Below, in pieces: positions 1,393 through 55,878 of a stretch of 64,000 bases of DNA. The notes beneath the pieces were generated by a model that worked only from the letters and a program-made list of their open reading frames with translations, did no database searches and was not told the origin of the DNA. The translations under genes were made by a program, and so were the position numbers. How positions within the stretch are numbered: position 1 is the stretch's first letter; each line of letters opens with the position of its first letter. This stretch comes from Anaeramoeba ignava BMAN (lineage: Eukaryota > Protista > Anaeramoebae), in assembly GCA_028826165.1 (NCBI GenBank), contig JAPDFW010000011.1, positions 124,001 through 188,000 on the forward strand, read 5' to 3'.

Positions 1393-4300
1393 TTATAATT
1401 CAAATTCGACATTTAAAAATTTTGAAATTGGAGAAGTTTTCTCGAGTTCAAGAGCTGATATGAAACATTTTGCGGCTTCTTTGTAATAGTTTGAAGGATT
1501 ATTATTATCGAGTTGGGCTTTTCTTTGCAAAACTTTTCCAAGACAATACCAGACTCTGTGATTCATTGGATCGAGCCTGATAGAACTTTTGAGAAAAGAT
1601 TCCGCAAGATGGATGTTGTATTGTTTTTCTGTTTGATTTGGTGAAATTTTCTGGTGGTTTTCTGTTGATTTTTGTTGCGGAAGGGAGGAAAGATTTGGAT
1701 CATTAAGATGATTTGAAATCAATGATTCTTTTGGGTTGTCAACAAGGGAGTATTCGTTTTTTGATCTATGAAGATAAGAATGGACATTGGAATTTGGTTT
1801 CAAATGGAGTTTTGATTTTGATTTTGATTTCTGTTGGGGATCGTCTGTTTTGGAGTCTTTGTTGTTGCTGTTGTCATTTCTTTTATTTTTGCTATTATCA
1901 TTATTTTTTGGATTGTCATCATTTCTTTTATTTTTGTTATTATCGTTATTTTTTGGATTGTCAGTATTTTCGCTATCATCACCATTTTCCGAGTCGATAA
2001 AAGAAGATTTGTAGAAAATAAGCCCAGTTTGAAGAAGCGCCTTTTGGTTGTTTGGGGAAAGAGAAAGAGCTTTTTCAAGATGTTCAAGAGCGGATTGATA
2101 GTTTTTGATTTTATAGGCAAGAAAGCCGAGATAATAGAACTGGTCTGAGGTGTGGAAGGGATAGAAGAAGGTTTCCTTGATGCAGTTGAGCGCGTCGTCA
2201 TAGAGGTTGAGGTTGATGAATTTTCTTGCAGATTCGAGCCAGATGAGTTTGAACAGCTTGACTCCGTTGAGCATTTTGGAACGCATTGGGTTAAACTCAT
2301 CCGTTTTGTTTTGAGAGTGTATTGAGTTCTCGTTGAAAAGCTGGTGGATATTTCCCGAGAAGGAGTACTGGCTTTGGAGATCCGAGAAGTTTGTGTTTGA
2401 GGAAAGATCCGAGTTGTCCATGTTTTGGTTTGTGTTCCACACCTCGTTTGTTTTGATCCCGTCGATCATTTCCGTTGAGTTTTTTTTCAATTTATCACGT
2501 GAGTCGGAATCTTGTGGAAGACCCGATTTTCCTTTGTCTGTTTGTTTTGTTTGTTGGAATGATATTTCTTGGTTTTGAGATTTGGATTGGGATTGGATTT
2601 CTTTTTGGGTTGTTTTGTCGGGTGTTTCAAAAGTTGGATCGTATATTTTTCTCCATTGAATCAGCGCCGCTTTGATTGGCGCGAACTGGTTGATTGGGAT
2701 GTTATTTGGTGCGGTTGTTGATATTTCTGCGAGAATTCTTGATTTGAGAAGCAATAAAAGAATGCAATCTTGATGTTCCTCGAGCGCAGCATTGCATGCA
2801 TCGAGCGCAAAGAAGTAGTTTTTCTGCGCGCTCAATACCAGCGTGAAAAGATACCAGTAGCTGACCTTTGAGCGGTCGAGAGAGAGTGAGAGCTTTACAA
2901 AATTCAGGGCGTCTTGATTATTTCGAGCATGTGCATATTGCAGTGCTAAATGGAACGCAATTTTCGAGTCTTTGGGGTTGATTTTGAAGCATTTGTGCAG
3001 ATATTTCAATGCCATCTGCCGATGCCTCTTCTTTTCCTCCATTGTTTTTGATTCAAAAGACAGTTTTCCATAGCAAACCCCGATTGTATATAAACACTGG
3101 GTTCTATTTTTCTTGGTTTTTTTTGCTCGAATCGCCATTTCCAGCGCTTCTTCTGTTAATTTTAAATTATTCACGCATAATTTCGCACACAAAAGAAGCG
3201 CAAACGTGTTTTCTGGTTCTCGCAGAAGAACGTTCTTCAGCGCAAAGTGTGCTTTTCTGTAATGTCTTGCGCAAATCAATGACAAAGCATATTGTGTTCC
3301 AAAATACGGATCCCCAAGTTTGTATTGCAGACCAATTTCAAAAGCTGGGGAAACCATGTTGCTTTGGATGATTGAAGAGTATGCAACAGCAAGATAATCG
3401 AAACATAATTCGGAATTGTCTCTAGCTGTAAAACTATTTGTATATTTACTGGGCAAATTTTCGTTATTAATTGAAACATCTTCATCAATTTTTTCTTTTT
3501 CTTTTTCTTTTTCATTTTCATTTTCATTTTCATTTTCAATTTTAATTTCTTTTTCTTTTTCTTTTTCTTTTTCTTTTTCAATTTTAATTTTAATTTCTTT
3601 TTCAATTTCTTTTATTTTCTCTTCTGGATTCTTTTCAAATCCTTCAATAAGAACCTTCGATAAAATTTTCATCAATAGAATTATTTCTTCGATTCGATTT
3701 TCGGGATAGAACAAATCCGTTGCCTTTTCCTTCTCAATTTTAACGTAATTTTTATCAGAAATATTTGTTGACAATAAATATCCCAATCGAATAAGTGTTT
3801 TCTTTGTAATACCGCTTTCTGTCAAATGCAGATCTCCAACTGCGCGAGAATGCATCTTCCTTTTAAGAAAAAGACGCAGGTTCTTCACAGCTTCATGAAC
3901 ATTTCCTGTCTGTTGTTGCATATTTGCGTAATTGAAAAAAATTTCTTCTACAATTTGATACTGATCCTTTGTCCATCCTACTTTCTCTCTTTCGCTTAGA
4001 GACAGTATTTCTTCTTGGATCTTCCCATAATAATCAATCGCCTCTTTGTGTTCTCCAAGGTTCTCTGAGGCAAGTGCTAGCATCCACTGTGATTCTATCC
4101 ATGTAAAGTCGATTAAATTGGATTTTGTTTTTGTTTTTGTTTTCAGACTTAAAAAATTTTCAAGATATTTCTTCGTTTGTAAATGTTCTTTTTGTAAATG
4201 TGATATTTTTCCTGCAAGAAATAATATTTCCTGTAAAAATACAAAGGAGTTGATTTATTTTGTTATTTTGGAATTTCTTTTTTTTTTTTTTTGGAATTTT

Positions 4301-4428
4301 TTTTTTACTGGATTATTTGGTTCATTTTCTAATGTTTTTTGTATTGTTTCTTTGGCTTCTGTTAACTTTTTAGTTGATATTAAAGTTTCTACTGTTTTTA
4401 TTATTTCACGAACTGTTTTTTTAGACAT
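1393..4428 (-). CDS. TPR-repeat protein, TTC7/Ypp1/NPG1-like; 2 exons (intron 4231-4308)
   Basis: Multiple TPRs; segment LALQYA...WYLFTLVLSAQK...ALDACNAALEE resembles TTC7/NPGR; ATG at 4428 and a GT..CAG intron restore the frame into the 896-aa ORF. Confidence 0.75.
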
Positions 4429-4598
4429 TTAATTGAATATTTTTATTATTAAAAAAAAAAGAAAAAAAAAAGGAATGAAGAAAAAAATGAAAAATTTTTT
4501 TTTTCATTTTTTTCATTTTTTTCATTTTCATTTTTATTTTGAATTTAAATTTGATTTTTTCTATTTCTTCTTTTTGTTTTTTTTTCTTATTAATCTAA

Positions 4599-7500
4599 AT
4601 GAGTAATTTAGATATTCGAAACCAAAAAAAACAAACTTTTTTTGCAAATTTTCTAGTAGATGGAGAAATTTTAGAAAAATTATGGCAAATTTATCAAAAA
4701 TCACCAGATGTAAATAATAAAAATAATAATAAAAAAAAAAAGCAAAAAAATTTTCAAAATAAAAATAAAAAATTAAAAATTAAAATAAAAAAGGAATCAA
4801 ATTTTTATTCTTTTGGTCAACAATTTATTATTTCTTTTATGAAATGGAATCCAGAACAAAAATTTAATTCAGAAAAAGAGAAAGATCTTAATTTAGCAAT
4901 TGAAATGCATTTTGCACATCCTTATGAAGTTATTGTAGCAATAATAAAAGCATTTGCAAGATGTCTTGAAAATTTAGAAAGTAAAAAATTTCAAAAGAAA
5001 AAAGATGTTTTTGTTTTTTTAATTTTTCTTTTTTTTTTAGAAATTAAAATTACCCAAAAAGAAAATGAACGAATTGATTTTCGAAATTCAAATCTTAAAT
5101 GTTTAATTTCTCTTGAAATTATTTTAATCCTTTGTCGTTCACCTTATAACAGGGAACAACTTATAAATTTAGAAATATTTACCATATTATCACAATTTCT
5201 TGAAATATCGAAAGATTTTCTTATAATTATATCACAACAAGTTAATTAAATTTAAAAACAATTTAAGAAAATTTATATTTAACAAATTTATTCAACAAAT
5301 TTATATTTAACAAATTTTATTTAACAAATTTATATTTAACAAATTTATTAAACAAATTTATATTAAACAAATTTATATTAAACAAATTTATATTAAACAA
5401 ATTTATATTAAAAAAATTTATATTAAACAAATTTATATTAAACAAATTTATTCAACAAGTTTATATTTAACAAATTTATATTTAACAAATTTATATTAAA
5501 TAAATTTATATTAAACAAATTTATATTAAACAAATTTATATTAAACAAATTTATATTAAACAAATTTATATTAAACAAATTTATATTAAACAAATTTATA
5601 TTTAACAAATTTATATTTAACAAATATATTAAAACAAATTTATATTTAACAAGTTTATATTAAAACAAATTTATATTAAACAAATTTATATTAAACAAAT
5701 TTATATTAAACAAATTTATATTTAACAAATTTTATTAAACAAAATTTATATTTAACAAATTTATATTTAAACAAATTTATATTTAACAAATTTATATAAA
5801 ACAAATTTATATTAAAACAAATTTATATTTAAACAAATTTATATTTAACAAAATTTATATTTAACAAATTTTATTTAACAAATTTATATTTAACAAATTT
5901 ATTCAACAAATTTATATTAAAACAAGTTTATATTTAACAAATTTATATTTAACAAATTTATATTAAACAAATTTATTAAAAACAAATTTATATTTAACAA
6001 ATTTATATTAAACAAATTTATATATTTAACAAATTTTATATTTAACAAATTTATATTAAACAAATTTATATTTAACAAATTTATATTAAAACAAATTTAT
6101 ATTTAACCAAAATTTATATTTAATAAATTTATATTAAACAAATTTATATTAAACAAATTTATATTAAACAAATTTATATTAAACAAATTTATATTAAACA
6201 AATTTATATTTAACAAATTTATTAAACAAATTTATATTTAACAAATTTATATTAAAACAAATTTATTAAACAAGTTTATATTTAGCAAAATTTATATTTA
6301 ACAAATTTATATTAAACAAATTTATATTAAACAAATTTATATTAAAACAAATTTATATTAAACAAATTTATATTAAAACAAATTTATATTTAGCAAAATT
6401 TATATTTAACAAATTTATATTTAACAAATTTATATTTAACAAATATATTAAACAAATTTATATTTAACAAGTTTATATTTAACAAATTTATATTTAACAA
6501 ATTTATATTTAACAAATTTATATTTAACAAATTTATATTTAACAAATTTATATTTAACAAATTTATATTAAACAAATTTATATTTAACAAATTTATATTT
6601 AACAAATTTATATTAAAACAAATTTATATTTAACAAATTTATTCAACAAGTTTATATTAAACAAATTTATATTAAACAAATTTATTCAACAAGTTTATAT
6701 TTAACAAATTTATATTAAACAAATTTATATTAAACAAATTTATATTAAACAAATTTATATTTAAACAAATTTATATTAAACAAATTTATATTTAACAAAT
6801 TTATATTTAACAAATTTATATTTAACAAATTTATTCAACAAATTTATATTAAACAAATTTATATTTAACAAATTTATATTAAACAAATTTATATTAAACA
6901 AATTTATATTAAACAAATTTATATTAAACAAATTTATATTAAACAAATTTATATTTAACAAATTTATATTAAACAAATTTATATTAAACAAATTTATATT
7001 TAACAAATTTATTCAACAAATTTATATTTAACAATTTAGGAAAGAAATCAACATATGTTCAATAATTTATTTCTCGTTCAATATATTTATAGTAAATGTT
7101 TAGAAATTATTAATCGTTTTTTTCGACATAATGATATTGATGAAGAAAAGAAAAAATTTTATATTGGGTTTAGAAGATATGGGATTGTAAGGAAAATTTT
7201 AGGTAAAAATTATAATAAATACAAAATAAAAATTTATAATAAATATAAAATAAAATTTATAATAAATACAAAATAAAAATTTATAATAAATATAAAATAT
7301 AAAATAAAATTTATAAAAATAGAGTCATTAAAAGAAAATTTAAATTTGAGGAAAAAATATGTTTTCACAAAAAAACATTATGATCTCCAAAACCACTTTC
7401 TTGATATATTAGAACAGTTATTTTTATTTGATATTTTTTCTACAGATGAAAAAATTGAAATGGCATCACTTCTTATTGATTTTTTCAAGTTGCCAAATTT

Positions 7501-30663: not shown

Positions 30664-32795
30664 TTAATTATGATATTCTTTGAGAATTCTTAATAAAGAA
30701 GAATTTTCATTTAATTGGTAATAATCAACTGCATCTTGAAGATCATCAATTATTGATTGAGAAAGTGATTTGGGAAGTTTGTTTGTGTAAAGAAATTTAA
30801 CTAAAGTTTGAACAGAGTTAAATGATTTTCCACTATAATCATTCACACAATTAGAATTATCAGAAACACTTAAAAACATCCCACGATATAAATCACTTCT
30901 CATTAATAGTACAAATTTATGCACTTTGATTCCTTTTTTTTCCACAATTATCGTGAAATCTTTTGATTCATCGTCTTCATAAATTTCAATAAAAAAATGT
31001 TTCAATTTTTCAACTTGATTATCAGGACTTAAATCAATCGAAAGATCATCAAGAATTGTTTTTACTGCTTCATAATTCTTTGTTCTTCCGGTATAAACCC
31101 AAGTGAAAAAAATATTGCATGTTTCAAGTGTTTGAGTTTTGAAGAAATTGATAAGTTCTTCTGGTTTTTTTTTGAGTATTCTTGTTACAAAAAAAGAATG
31201 CAATTCAAAATTTCCTCCATGACAACTTAATACCAAATCACACTTTTCTTTTCTTTCAAATAATATCCTCAAGTCTTCAATTAATCCTGAATAGAATATT
31301 GACTTTTTGTTTTTAAATAAATGTGAGCAAAAAAAAAATCACATTTCTTTCTTAATAATAATAAAAATTTACAGAAACATCAAAAATATGAATTTGTGAG
31401 GCGTGAGTTGTTCCAAGACAAAGCCAATTTTTGTTAGATACACATGCCCATATTGCGCCCTCAACAGTACTTCCATAAATCTTTTTTTCATTCTTTAAAA
31501 TTTTTTTGTTATTTTTGTTTTCATTCAAATTTAAAAAAAAAATAATTGTTTTTGCAATTTACATTAAGATCATATATTGTAAAATTTCCATTTTCATCTG
31601 ATGTAAATAATTTTGATTGAGTTCTTGAAATGGAAATGATTGGGTTTGAATGTAGACTAATATTTTCTATCAACTTTCCTGTCTTAATTATACAATAAAA
31701 ATAAATAAAAAAATAATTTGAATATTTTAATTGATTTCGAATCAAGTTATCCAATTTTACTTCAAGATCAAATTTCTTGATTAATCCATCAACTGCAGCT
31801 GTTATTGCATAATTCTTATAAAATTCAATAGACCATGTATCTTCTTTATGTTTTTCAAAACTACGAAGTAAAGATAATGTCTGAAATGATTATTTAAATT
31901 AATAAAAAAAATATTTAAATATAAATTTAAATTTTTAAATGAAATTTACTTCAGGATCTCTTTCTTGAATTGCTCCTGATGAAAGACCAAAATATACTAA
32001 GTTATTATGGAATGATATTCCTAATATTTCAGCTTCTAAATTAACTTTCTTTTTGAGTATAAATTGCTTTTTATCCTTTAAACACTTGGAAATATTTTAT
32101 ATTTTGATAAAAAAAAAAGTAAGAAAAATTTTTTCCCAAATCGAAAAAAAAATTTTTTTTTTTTTTGCTTTTTAAAATGAGACTATTTATACAATTTCAT
32201 AAATATGAATATTTCCATTTTGATTTCCTGCAAAAAGTAAATCTTTGTATAAACTAATTTTGAAAAAATAAGAAGAGTAAACTTCAGAATCTTCAATTAA
32301 TAATTCTCCATCCTTTATAAAAAAAAAAATAATAAAATTTAAGTTAAAAATTAAAATTAAAATTAAAAATGAAATTTTTACTTTTTCTTTGAAAGCATAA
32401 AGTTGATAACCACATGCAAATATCATATCTTTATAACGAGCAAGTGAAAAAAGATAACTATTACAGTTTTGACTCCAAATACATTTTTGAGTCTAAACGG
32501 AAAATTTTCTCTTAAATTATGTCACTTTCTTTAATTATAAATTTTTTTTTTTTTTTTGCTTAAAATGAAATTTTACTTGTAAATCCCATTTTTTCAAATT
32601 ATAATCAAAACTAGCTGAAAAAAGTTTATCTTTTTCTAATAATAATGTTCTAATTTCTTGTGTATGCTCCTTTAATATATAAGCTTCTTTTAATTCCTGA
32701 ATAGAATCATCATTTTTCTTTATTAAACAATAAAATTAAATTAAAATAAAATTTTTTAATTTTAAAATCTTTTCAAAACAAACTTCTTCATTCAT
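30664..32795 (-). CDS. Seven-bladed WD40 + tandem BTB/POZ protein; 9 exons
   Basis: Exons 32784-32795, 32577-32717, 32382-32492, 32193-32312, 31950-32075, 31761-31880, 31563-31682, 31373-31492 and 30664-31302 splice in frame at GT-AG; LFSASFDYNLKKWD; BTB motif DFTIIVEKKGIKVHKFVLLMRSDLYRGMF. Confidence 0.88.
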
Positions 32796-49685: not shown

Positions 49686-51516
49686 TTAATTTTGATTATT
49701 AAATTTGTTAATTAATAAATCAAATAAATTTGGATTTGTTTGATTTAATTGAAAATAATCAATTCCAATTTGAATTTCATTAATTATTTCTTGTGTAATT
49801 TGAATTCCTTCTTTAATTTGATTTGAATAAATCCAATATTCAAATATTTGAAATGATTTATTACTTAATTCACTATAATCTGTAACTTTATTAGATTTAT
49901 CTTCTGTTACAGATAAAAACATTCCTCGATATAATTCACTTCTCATTATTAATATTAATTTAGGAAATTTATATTGTTTTTCTTTTCTTTCAATTATAAA
50001 ATCTTTTTCATTTTCATTTAAATAAATTCTTTTCATCGTTTCTTCAATTTTTTCATTTGAATTTATAATTTCTTTGATTTCATAATATAATTTTGGATTT
50101 ATTTTGGAATTGTTTGAATAAATCATTTCAAATATTTGATTTGATTCTTTAATTGATTTATTTGAAATAATTTCTTGAAGTTTTTCAAGTTGATTTTGAT
50201 TTTGATTTAATCTATATTTTAATATTAATTTATGAGCTTCAATTATTTCTCCATTTTCTGTTTTAAATGAAATATCACAAAATTCTTTTCTTCTAAATAA
50301 TTTTATCAAATCTTCTTCAAGATTGGAAAAAGAAGGAGGAGAATAATAAAGAAATGATCTGCAATATTCACAAGAAAGATGATAATTATAAATTTCTTCA
50401 TTAAATCTTAATTCAGGAAGTTCAATTTGAATTGGAATTTCTTGATAATTTGTATCTCCAATTCCTAATTCACCATAATGATTCTTCCCAAATCCAATTA
50501 GTTTCCCTTTGGAAGTAAAAATCAAAGTATGATTAGAACCAGTAGAAATTTCAAGAATATTATCATCATTTTCAAATAAAGATGATTTGATTTCAGTAAA
50601 TTCATGATAATCTTCAGTTTGTTTGTTATATTGAATAAATGGATAAAGTTCTCTTTTTGTATTTTCGTGTTTATTTTTGCCAAGTCCATTGTATTGATAA
50701 TTTCCACATGAATAAAGTTTTCTTTTTGGATTTTGATTTTCATCTTCATTTTCAATCAACATTATTGAATGATTAAATCCGGATTGAATATCAATTATTT
50801 TGCCTTTTGGAATATTTTGGATTTTGGTTAAATTTTGGATTTTTGTTTCTTCTTTTTCTGTTACTGATTCTCCTAATCCAATTTGACCATATTCATTATT
50901 TCCGCATCCAAATAATTCTTGATTTGAATTTAAAAGAAAAACATGTTTTGAAAAATTTCCTGAAAACATTTTAGAAACATTTTTCATCATTAAAATTGGT
51001 TTTTGTGTTTTTTTAAGTGTTTCAGAATCTAAACCAAGTTGACCAAAATCATTTGAACCAAATCCATAAACATTTTGATTTGAAGTTAATAAGTAAATTG
51101 AATTGAATCCAGAAGCAATATCTTCAATTATTCTATCATTTTGTATCTTCAATTAATGATGAAATATTGATAAATTTATTTGGATTTTCTGAATTAATAT
51201 CAATTCCTTTGGCAAATACATTTCCTTTTATTGTTAAAATAGCCGCATTTTGCCAACCAACAGATGCTTTTTGAATATTTTCTACAATTTGGATTATTGA
51301 AGGATTTTGACTTAAATATTTTGAATATTCTATTGCTTTTCCATTTTTAAAAAGGAAAATTATTGAATAATCTTTTGATGATGAAATTTGTTTAATTTGT
51401 TTTCCATTTTCATTTTCATTTCCAAATCTAAATTGAATTGGTTTTTTTATATCATATGGTTTATTTTTGAAAATTTTTGGTTCTCTATTTGCACCAAAAA
51501 ATATAATTTCATTCAT
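49686..51516 (-). CDS. RCC1-repeat + BTB protein, tandem copy 1 (1-nt frameshift near 51140)
   Basis: GxNxxGQLG RCC1 repeats; FCDISF..AHKLILKYR and DFII..RSELYRGMF BTB domains. Confidence 0.88.
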
Positions 51517-51853
51517 TTTTAAAAAGTAAAAAAATGAAAAAATGATTTGGAACTTTTTAATTTTAATTTTAATTTTAATTTTAATTTTGATTTTTAATTT
51601 TATTTTTAATTTTAATTTTAATTTTAATTTTAATTTTAATTTTAATTTTAATTTTAATTTTAATTTTAATTTTAATTTTAATTTCAATTTTAATTTTGAT
51701 TATTAAATTTTTTAATTAATAAATCAAATAAATTTAGATTTGTTTGATTTAATTGAAAATAATCAATTCCTCTTTTATTTTATTTATTTTAATTATTTGA
51801 TGAATTGAATAATATTTAAATAATAGTTTTAGATTTGATTCTTTAATTTAATT

Positions 51854-53689
51854 TTAATTTTGATTTTGATTTTGATTATTAAATTTGTTAATTAATAAAT
51901 CAAATAAATTTGGATTTGTTTGATTTAATTGAAAATAATCAATTCCTGTTTTAATTTCTTCAATAATTTCTTGTGTAATTTTAATTCCTTCTTTAATTTG
52001 ATTTGAATAAATCCAATATTCAAATATTTGAAATGATTTATTACTTAATTCACTATAATCTGTAACTTTATTTGATTTATCTTCAGTTACAGATAAAAAC
52101 ATTCCTCGATATAATTCACTTCTCATTATTAATATTAATTTTGGAAATTTATATTGTTTTTCTTTTCTTTCAATTATAAAATCTTTTTCATTTTCATTTT
52201 CATTTTCATTTTCATTTAAATAAATTCTTTTCATTGTTTCTTCAATTTTTTCATTTGAATTTATAATTTCTTTAATTTCAGAATATAATATTGGATTTAT
52301 TATTCTGTTTGAATAAATCATTTCAAATATTTGATTTGATTCTTTAATTGATTTATTTGAAATAATTTCTTGAAGTTTTTCATTTTCATTTTGATTTTGA
52401 TTTAATCTATATTTTCAATATTAATTTATGAGCTTCAATTATTTCTCCATTTTCTGTTTTAAATGAAATATTACAAAATTCTTTTCTTTCAAATAGTTTT
52501 ATCAAATCTTCTTCAAGATTAGAAAAAGAAGGAGAAGAATAATAAAGAAAAGATCTGTTATATCCACAAGAAATATGATAATTAAAAATTTCTTCATTAA
52601 ATCTTAATTTAGGAAGTTCAATTTGAATTGGAATTGTTTTAAAGTTAGTATTTTCAGTTCCTAATTGACCTGAAGAATTATATCCAAATCCTATCATTTG
52701 TTTTGAAGTTAAAATCAAAGTATATCCATCTCCAACAGAAAAATCAAGAATAATATCATCATTTTCAAATAAAGATGATTTGATTTCAGTAAATTCATAA
52801 GTACATTCATCATTTCTATAAAGTCCATTAAATTCTAAATATCCACATGAATAAAGTTTTCTTTTTGGATTTTCATTTTGATTTTCATCTTCAATCAACA
52901 TTATTGAATGAAATTCTCCACATTGAATATCAATTATTTTGCCTTTTGGAATATTTTGGATTTTGGTTAAATTTTGGATATTTGTTTCTTCTTGTTCTGT
53001 TATTGATTTTCCTAATCCTACTTGACCATATTCATTATCACCGCATCCAAATAATTCTTGATTTGAATTTAAAAGAAAAATATGATTTGCAGAATTTCCT
53101 GAAAATATTTTAGAAACATTTTTCATCATTAAAATTGGTTTTTCTGTTTTTTGAAGTGTTCCATAATCAAAACCAAGTTGAGCATAAAAATTATCTCCAA
53201 TTCCATAAGCATTTTGATTTGAAGTTAATAAGTAAATTGAATGAGCTCCGGAAACAATATCTTCAATTATTCTATCATTTTTATCTTCAATTAATGATGA
53301 AATATTGATAAATTTATTTTGGATTTTCTGAATTAATATCTTCTCCTTTGGCAAATACATTTCCTTCTTTCGTTAAAATAGCTTCATTTCGATAACCAAC
53401 AGTTACTTTTTGAATATTTTCTTCAATTTGGATTTTTTCAGGATTTTGATTTTGAATCTTTTTCATTTAAATATTCTATTGCTTTTCCATTTTTAAAAAG
53501 GAAAATTGTTGAAAAATAACCTGATGCAATTTGTTTAATTTGTTTTTCATTTTCATTTTCATTTTCATTTTCATTTTCATTTTCATTTTCATTTTCAAAT
53601 TTAAATTGAATTGGTTTTGTTATTTTTTCTAATTCATTTTTGATAAACTTTGGAGATTGATTTGAACCAAAAAATAAAATTTCATTCAT
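51854..53689 (-). CDS. RCC1-repeat + BTB protein, tandem copy 2 (several 1-nt frameshifts; assembly error or pseudogene)
   Basis: Collinear paralogue of copy 1 split over three ORFs. Confidence 0.8.
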
Positions 53690-53927
53690 TTCTGAAAAGA
53701 AAAAAAGAAAAAATGAAAAAATGTTTTTGGAATTTTAATTTTAATTTTATTTTTAATTTTAATTTTAATTTTAATTTTAATTTTAATTTTAATTTTAATT
53801 TTAATTTTGATTATTAAATTTTTAATTTTTAATTTTAGATTTTAATTGAATTTTCAATTTTTATTTTAATTTTAATTTTAATTTTAATTTTAATTTTAAT
53901 TTGATTCTTTAATTTTAATTTTGATTT

Positions 53928-55694
53928 TTAATTTTGATTATTAAATTTGTTAATTAATAAATCAAATAAATTTGGATTTGTTTGATTTAATTGAAAATAA
54001 TCAATTCCAATTTGAATTTCATTAATTATTTCTTGTGTAATTTGAATATCTTCTTTAATTTGATTTGAATAAATCCAATATTCTAATATTTGAAATGATT
54101 TATCACTTAATTCACTATAATCTGTAACTTTATTAGATTTATCTTCAGTTACAGATAAAAACATTCCTCGATATAATTCACTTCTCATTATTAATATTAA
54201 TTTTGGGAATTTATATTGTTTTTCATTTCTTTCAATTATAAAATCTTTTTCATTTTCATTTTCATTTTCATTTAAATAAATTCTTTTCATTGTTTCTTCA
54301 ATTTTTTCATTTGAATTTATAATTTCTTTAATTTCAGAATATAATTTTGGATTTATTATTCTGTTTGAATAAATCATTTCAAATATTTGATTTGATTCTT
54401 TAATTGATTTATTTGAAATAATTTCTTGAAGTTTTTCAATTTGATTTTGATTTTGATTTAATCTATATTTCAATATTAATTTATGAGCTTCAATTATTTC
54501 TCCATTTTCTGTTTTAAATGAAATATCACAAAATTCTTTTCTTCCAAATAATTTTATCAAATCTTCTTCAAGATTAGAAAAAGAAGGAGAAGAATAATAA
54601 AGAAAAGATCTGAAATATCCACAAGAAATATGATAATTAGAAATATCTTCATTAAATATTAATTCAGGAAGTTCAATTTGAATAGGAATTGTTTGCATTC
54701 CTGTATCTTCAGTTCCTAATTGACCATATTGATTAAACCCAAATCCTATCAACTTATTATTGGTTGTTAAAATCAAAGTATGAAAATGTCCACAAGAAAT
54801 TTCACGAATATTATCATTTTCAAATAAAGATGATTTGATTTCAGTAAATTCATAAGTATTTTCATTTTTGCCAAGTCCATTATATTCCCAGTATCCACAT
54901 GAATAAAGTTTTCTTTTTGGGTTTCATTTTCATTTTCAATCAACATTATTGAATGAATTGAAGATTGAATATCAATTATTTTGCCTTTTGGAATATTTTG
55001 GATTTTGGTTAATTTTTGGATTTTTCTTTCTTTTATTGATTCTCCTAATCCAAGTTGGCCACGTAAATTATATCCACAACCAAATAATTCTTGATTTGAA
55101 TCCAAAAGAAAAATAGATTGTGAAGAATTTCCTGAAAATATTTTAGAAACATTTCTCATTATTAAAATTGGTTTTTCTGTTTTTTTAAGTGTTTTCAGAA
55201 TCAAAACCAAGTTGACCAAATTGATTTGAACCAATTCCATAAGCATTTTGATTTGAAGTTAATAAGTAAATCGATTGAGAAGTAGAAATAATATCTTGAA
55301 TTATTCTATCATTTGTATCTTCAATTAATGATGAAATATTGATAAATTGATTTGGATTTTTTGAATTAATATCTATTCCTTTAGCAAATACATTTCCTTC
55401 TATTGTTAAAATAGCTAAATTTTCATGACCAACAGTTACTTTTTGGATATTTTCAAATGGAATTTCTTGAGGATTTTGAATTGGATTGTTGTGAACAAAA
55501 TATTCTATTGCTTTTCCATTTTTAAAAAGGAAAATTGTTGAATAATAACCTGATGCGATTTTTTTAATTTGATTTTCATTTTCATTTTCATTTTCATTTT
55601 CGAATTTAAATGGAATTGGTCTTTTTATCGAATTTGGTTCATTTGGAATAAGAATTGGTGATTGATTGTAACCAAAAAATAAACAATCATTCAT
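53928..55694 (-). CDS. RCC1-repeat + BTB protein, tandem copy 3 (frameshifts near 55190 and 54920)
   Basis: Collinear paralogue of copy 1 split over three ORFs. Confidence 0.8.
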
Positions 55695-55878
55695 TTTCTT
55701 AAAAGAAAAAAAATGAAAGAATGAAAACACGTTTTTTTTTTTTAAATTTTAAATTTTGGAAGATTTCTTAAATTTGGAATTTTGAAATTTTATTTATATT
55801 TTTTTTTATCAAGATTTTCAAAAAAGAAAATCCAAAAAAAAAAGTTAAATTTTCATAAAATAAAATAAATGAATTCTT

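Follow-up and report, generated by a model that had tools for sequence, protein, structure and literature searches.

The window analyzed here, a 64,000-nucleotide stretch of eukaryotic, very A+T-rich DNA from Anaeramoeba ignava BMAN (contig JAPDFW010000011.1, positions 124,001 to 188,000), bears on its minus strand (30664-32795) a gene of nine exons and eight introns, whose product is the public A. ignava protein KAJ5080227.1 (505 aa; hereafter P0001). A query with its last exon against 1.8 billion representative proteins recovered this 505-residue protein at 100% identity, under the public record name 'lissencephaly-1'. All its exons lie on the minus strand. Exon 0 (12 nt; 32784..32795) supplies the start codon and three further codons (MNEE); a homologous 15-nt first exon is present in the paralog P0151, where it is borne out by the transcript-derived protein P0072. 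Seven exons then encode one WD40 repeat each, viz., exon 1 (141 nt; 32577..32717), exon 2 (111 nt; 32382..32492), exon 3 (120 nt; 32193..32312), exon 4 (135 nt, 31950..32084, in the public model, or 126 nt, 31950..32075), exon 5 (120 nt; 31761..31880), exon 6 (120 nt; 31563..31682), and exon 7 (120 nt; 31373..31492). The terminal exon 8 (636 nt plus stop; 30664..31302) codes for a degenerate BTB-like half followed by a Pfam-recognized BTB domain, together forming a tandem-BTB tail. In the coordinates of P0001, the exon boundaries fall between residues 4/5, 51/52, 88/89, 128/129, 173/174, 213/214, 253/254, and 293/294.

The intron-bearing span (31303..32783, minus strand) contains introns 1-4 (32783-32718, 32576-32493, 32381-32313, and 32192-32085, the last reaching 32076 with an alternative acceptor) and introns 5-8 (31949-31881, 31760-31683, 31562-31493, and 31372-31303). 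All eight are of the GT...AG type, 66-117 nt long, with 6-17% G+C and in phase 0; genome-wide, the 32,108 introns of A. ignava have a modal length of 76 nt and 8% G+C (PMC11550330). Aligned exactly to the genome with splicing allowed, P0001 yields the same exons as the original prediction, which had been read from the DNA alone, with the intron 4 acceptor as the sole difference. Here, two in-frame acceptors lie 9 nt apart (32084 versus 32075), and the upstream one, used in the public model, adds the residues CLK to P0001, opposite which the paralog alignment shows a gap; the intron is in phase 0 with either. The analysis confirms that the seven exons hold one WD40 repeat each and that every intron is in phase 0. 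The further proposals that these exons end at a common register and that the whole BTB part resides in a single exon hold as well: the repeat exons stop 2-3 residues past strand C, and the PF00651 match falls within the 636-nt last exon. The blades are also strongly diverged, as had been claimed, with the seven repeat exons being mutually alignable at 10-23% identity.

Domain architecture, predicted fold, and likely partners

Whole-protein searches were run with the public record P0001, and the exons were searched one at a time. Single-exon Pfam scans were mostly blank because segments of 37-47 residues are too short; exon 1 (32577..32717, minus strand) gave weak WD40 and beta-propeller matches, and only the last exon gave a clear one (BTB, E 2e-13). 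The BTB domain (PF00651) is above its gathering score in P0001 and in the last exon (46.6-50.8 bits versus a cut-off of 20.5). The WD40 profile (PF00400) scores 20.4 bits against P0001, below its curated cut-off of 27, and several WD40-type propeller profiles match with E of 1e-10 to 1e-13, each below its own cut-off; the paralogs P0003, P0004, P0008, and P0010 exceed the PF00400 cut-off (39.5-70.2 bits). An AlphaFold2 model of P0001, computed from an input alignment of eight paralogs (pLDDT 88.2, pTM 0.79), has 28 strands in residues 15-291 followed by two alpha/beta BTB-like units. It confidently predicts a closed, seven-bladed WD40 propeller with four-stranded antiparallel blades. The C-terminal tail would comprise a degenerate BTB-like unit, as judged from the predicted secondary structure of its first half, followed by a single Pfam BTB.

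When the exons are laid on this model, each repeat exon is predicted to span strands D, A, B, and C, in this succession, i.e., the classical WD40 sequence repeat. Consequently, the original reading of one blade per exon stands as one sequence repeat per exon and fails for the structural blade: on the model, every blade would be built from two adjacent exons, with exon 1 contributing strands A-C of blade 1 as well as the strand D that completes the last blade, begun in exon 7.

Foldseek searches against solved structures returned, among the best matches, the WD40 domains of beta-TrCP and Fbw7/Cdc4 along with designed symmetric propellers (E about 1e-21). The SCF receptors beta-TrCP/FBXW11 and Fbw7/Cdc4 (TM 0.45-0.51 by query) dock via an F-box to Skp1-Cullin-1, whereas the WD40-BTB protein has no F-box and instead possesses BTB. 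The nearest solved BTB sequences include those of KLHL22 and KBTBD2, at weak similarity (E 1e-4 to 1e-2). These Kelch-BTB Cullin-3 adaptors likewise combine a beta-propeller recognition domain with BTB, and proteins of the LZTR1 and RCBTB types are also Cullin-3 adaptors that join a propeller to BTB. The A. ignava protein differs from all of these in that its propeller is WD40 rather than Kelch or RCC1 and is N-terminal, and in that its tail combines a degenerate BTB-like unit with one BTB. Judging from its domain types, KAJ5080227.1, a member of the A. ignava BTB family, probably serves as a Cullin-3 substrate adaptor, its N-terminal propeller likely acting as the substrate-binding face and its double BTB tail most likely dimerizing and docking onto a ubiquitin ligase of the Cullin-3 type.

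At least eight cullin loci are present in the A. ignava genome, six of which were examined by their best solved match. One of these, on contig C58 (locus L059, C58:18500-24600, at 4210-5757 within it), matches human Cullin-3 best (E 4e-127 versus 2e-107 for Cullin-4B), an assignment by best hit only. It is alone among the six in being Cullin-3-like, the other five being Cullin-4-like (four) or Cullin-1/2-like (one), which suggests an expansion of Cullin-4 in A. ignava. The C58 Cullin-3-like locus lies approximately 10 kb from a WD40-BTB paralog and another BTB gene (C58:5000-9100).

The WD40-BTB subfamily within the BTB expansion of A. ignava

The WD40 module is confined to at least 11 loci of the A. 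ignava genome: those of eight annotated proteins (P0001, P0002, P0003, P0004, P0007, P0008, P0010, and P0151) and three further loci, namely the partial model P0155 and two loci, on contigs C126 and C55, for which there is no usable model. The annotated paralogs are 29-35% identical to P0001 in the protein alignment. A homolog search with P0001 returned 20 proteins and missed known paralogs, making it uninformative on relatives outside A. ignava. In all eight annotated genes the introns occur at identical alignment columns (88, 125, 165, 212, 253, 304, and 344) and in phase 0, with a single loss, i.e., one of the seven introns of P0007, which results in a fused 240-nt exon. Exon 2 measures 111 nt at the C126 locus as well as in each of the eight and, on an approximate reading, about 117 nt at the other two unannotated loci. 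The P0155, C126, and C55 loci contain repeats b1-b7 in order, and their b2-b7 exons are AG/GT-bounded, in frame, and 111-132 nt long, with edges at the expected register or within a few bases of it. All 11 loci thus show the same succession of seven repeat exons, b1 to b7, and the only departures are the intron loss in P0007 and a frame-shifted blade-4 exon in P0003. This shared register of seven introns, recurring at the same columns across the paralogs, is more than chance.

The P0003 gene (KAJ5071033.1; C82:1029900-1033900, minus strand) was considered as a natural six-and-a-half-blade variant, a reading that was rejected. Its public model has exons of 10 and 38 nt and two 77-nt 'introns'; in the DNA, at about 1568-1695 of the locus, there is a single blade-4 exon of approximately 125 nt whose frame shifts by one base at an A5/T3 run. 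This shift, masked by the annotation, is either genuine or a product of misassembly. The closest paralog of the KAJ5080227.1 gene (C126:283300-292400, minus strand) shows a 6.3-kb separation between blades 1-3 and blades 4-7 plus BTB. Within this gap lies a 1018-aa ORF (3013-6066 within the locus, minus strand) with DDE_Tnp_4 and HTH_Tnp_4 domains, bordered by microsatellite DNA of 1-3% G+C. By its domains, this ORF appears to be a PIF/Harbinger-type transposase, pointing to a transposon inserted in the blade-3/blade-4 intron. The longest annotated A. ignava intron (4168 bp; PMC11550330) is shorter than this one.

The WD40-BTB subfamily is a small branch of a very large tandem-BTB family. A search of the A. 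ignava genome (42.8 Mb in 147 contigs) with the tandem-BTB tail gave 2023 first-look candidates, and all 150 that were scored had E below 1e-25; PF00651 gave 3711, and all 150 scored reached at least 75 bits. Set against a gene total of about 15,000, this expansion is enormous. The genome paper (PMC11550330) and the other literature searched contain no discussion of BTB genes or intron phase. In both A. ignava and A. flamelloides, BTB is combined with ankyrin, RCC1, Sel1, ubiquitin, and WD40 domains, among others. The RCC1-BTB, ANK-BTB, and Sel1-BTB branches share the tandem-BTB tail of approximately 200 residues with WD40-BTB at 35-51% identity, and gene structure differs between branches. 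Unlike the WD40-BTB genes, the RCC1-BTB genes are single-exon, those in the window having several blades and BTB in one open frame without inter-blade introns, and the other WD40 ORFs of the A. ignava genome run through more than two repeats uninterrupted. The ANK-BTB relatives have exons of 93-108 nt, with 27 of 28 introns in phase 0 (one A. flamelloides gene included), and their last intron follows the ankyrin register, at least 18 alignment columns further upstream than in the WD40 genes. This position led us to reject a module boundary shared by the branches just before the BTB exon. The exon-per-repeat pattern is tied to the N-terminal module.

Elsewhere in the window (49686-55730, minus strand) lies a tandem array of RCC1-BTB genes or pieces, with a 488-aa ORF at 49686-51152 carrying several RCC1 repeats and BTB in a single frame with no per-blade intron; the ORFs beside it look like split or broken RCC1-BTB copies. 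An ANK-BTB gene of A. flamelloides (JAOAOG010000266.1:1609975-1636927) spreads 515 codons over 24 kb, with all five introns in phase 0. Three of these are 7.1-7.3 kb long, a closeness in size that may point to a repeated element within these introns.

Assembly of the propeller and the standing of the gene

We consider it likely that KAJ5080227.1 is a fully spliced member of the WD40-BTB subfamily, combining a propeller with a putatively Cullin-3-docking BTB tail, whose layout was inherited from an ancient amplification of an exon+intron cassette. We propose that one exon for a D-A-B-C WD40 sequence repeat, together with its intron, would have been amplified in tandem to seven copies, and that this process would have been completed before the subfamily radiated. 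Ever since, the seven exons would have retained their number, order, and intron positions, with diversity arising via whole-gene duplication and point divergence rather than exon choice. Such an amplification, already put forward in the original prediction, is a plausible origin and the simplest account of the data, since the seven phase-0 introns share one repeat register. The repeats themselves provide no independent proof of an amplification specific to this lineage, as blades within the subfamily are no more alike than expected of generic WD40 repeats. Neither do the introns: an all-against-all blastn comparison produced 4115 matches, all of them A/T low-complexity, and yielded no signal of cassette age, the introns being 83-94% A+T low-complexity sequence that carries no usable signal of this kind.

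The similarity of the blades at the generic level would suit an inherited intronless gene of seven WD40 repeats that later gained its seven introns in parallel at the same position of each repeat, for instance through a sequence-directed site at the conserved repeat end, with subsequent spread by gene duplication. Such a history would be in keeping with the intron-dense genome of A. ignava (0.74 introns per kb, 32,108 introns; PMC11550330 supplement) and with a context shared by several exon junctions, in which GAA is followed across the junction by AC/AA. However, introns would have had to land seven separate times on one and the same codon boundary of a 40-codon unit, and junction contexts vary overall, with the commonest type accounting for just 4 of 59. 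Moreover, such introns are absent from other propeller genes of A. ignava, both WD40 and RCC1, whereas the ANK-BTB genes follow one repeat per exon at their own register, as growth by cassettes predicts. We hence regard parallel intron gain as unlikely.

A different question is whether the KAJ5080227.1 copy is itself functional, as its clean exon structure might merely have been inherited by a silent or decaying gene. A transcript-derived protein clustering with P0001 was looked for among its database relatives and none was found; additionally, in the blade tree, b3 and b6 of this gene sit on branches flagged as long, and P0001 has the lowest WD40 Pfam score in the subfamily. Against this, the reading frame runs unbroken through nine exons and 505 codons, each of the 16 splice sites is canonical, and the predicted fold is a confident one, which together make decay of this copy quite improbable. 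From the intact canonical sites and the transcript of a paralog, we infer full, constitutive splicing of the KAJ5080227.1 gene.

That transcript is represented by P0072, a protein derived from the A. ignava transcriptome in EukProt and the only one of this provenance found for the WD40-BTB subfamily. It is identical to P0151 (C46:602800-606400) save for one residue over positions 1-410, spans all eight junctions, and includes every exon. Past residue 410, inside the second BTB domain, P0072 departs from P0151, a divergence that reflects either paralogs fused during transcript assembly or the existence of another, near-identical gene copy.

Exon choice and the meaning of the layout

The original prediction had gone beyond gene structure in proposing that any blade could be skipped or swapped in frame to make a combinatorial substrate-recognition module, and had looked to paralogs and per-exon trees to expose shuffling. 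The paralogs exist, and their blades follow position. Blade-by-blade similarity between paralogs is 43-79 on the diagonal versus 24-40 off it, and the likeness of blades within a gene is no higher than that of off-diagonal pairs between genes. Mapped onto a 55-blade tree, the position label undergoes nine changes (minimum six; 37.5 when shuffled, with none of 200 shuffles as low) and the gene label 46, i.e., the blades cluster by position and not by gene. Building separate trees from blades 1-3, blades 4-7, and the BTB tail gave little resolution, and seven of the eight AU tests of conflicting groupings between parts of the gene were non-significant. The eighth (p 0.0065) concerned a grouping chosen post hoc after viewing the trees and is borderline after correction. 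Taken together, the fixed exon number and order, the positional orthology of the blades, the mostly null AU tests, and the complete exon set of P0072 speak against diversity having been generated by the skipping or swapping of blades. The outcome is the historical relic that had been named as the contrary finding, with no altered exon order among the 11 loci found, although the gene is multi-copy (at least 11 loci).

What speaks for symmetric exons in active use, be it through alternative splicing or exon recombination between paralogs, is the arithmetic by which phase-0 introns flanking every repeat exon leave any subset in frame, the resemblance of the BTB family overall to a diversified receptor repertoire, and the one nominally significant post-hoc topology test; with exactly seven repeat exons in the order b1-b7 at 11 of 11 loci, blades that are positional orthologs, and a paralog transcript containing all exons, this reading is very improbable. 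The predicted structure adds to the case against it: as each blade would be stitched from two neighboring exons and the ring closed by exons 1 and 7, skipping of one exon would yield a six-bladed ring with one chimeric blade. We give hardly any credence to rarer versions of exon choice, such as condition-specific in-frame skipping or exon exchange among the at least 11 paralogs, furnishing new blade combinations for a Cullin-3 receptor repertoire.

Exon-per-repeat genes with a uniform intron phase are also known in the LRR genes of Tetrahymena, with their arrays of 90-bp exons (PMC6564038), and in the ROCO/LRR genes of brown algae (PMC11378527). In both, exon counts differ from gene to gene, exon length is exactly uniform, and shuffling mechanisms have been proposed. 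The Tetrahymena arrays, whose 90-bp exons have a conserved leucine pattern, were attributed by the authors to clonal exon amplification (PMC6564038), and alternative splicing has additionally been proposed for the brown-algal genes (PMC11378527). The WD40-BTB genes, in contrast to both, have seven exons of fixed number and order that are only 10-23% identical and encode a closed ring requiring a set number of blades. Unlike the dynamic exon-cassette genes, they show no variation in the number or order of repeat exons among the 11 loci.

With cassette amplification as the preferred origin, the significance of these genes lies chiefly in what their introns would record. Propellers are thought to have grown by the amplification of a single blade-sized unit, a history that has been erased in most genes. 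In the WD40-BTB genes, the intron positions would preserve this assembly history and indicate that the copied piece was the D-A-B-C sequence repeat and not the structural blade. Once the ring had reached seven units, the number would have been frozen through at least 10 gene duplications, providing a natural contrast with open-ended arrays, such as those of LRR and ankyrin repeats, where an exon-per-repeat layout accompanies changing repeat number. No new mechanism is revealed thereby, as repeat genes with exons that mirror the repeats are a kind already known. For A. ignava, the subfamily adds a small, well-defined branch to a very large and so far unpublished BTB expansion, in which the exon-per-repeat layout looks like an old scar of gene assembly rather than a mix-and-match device.
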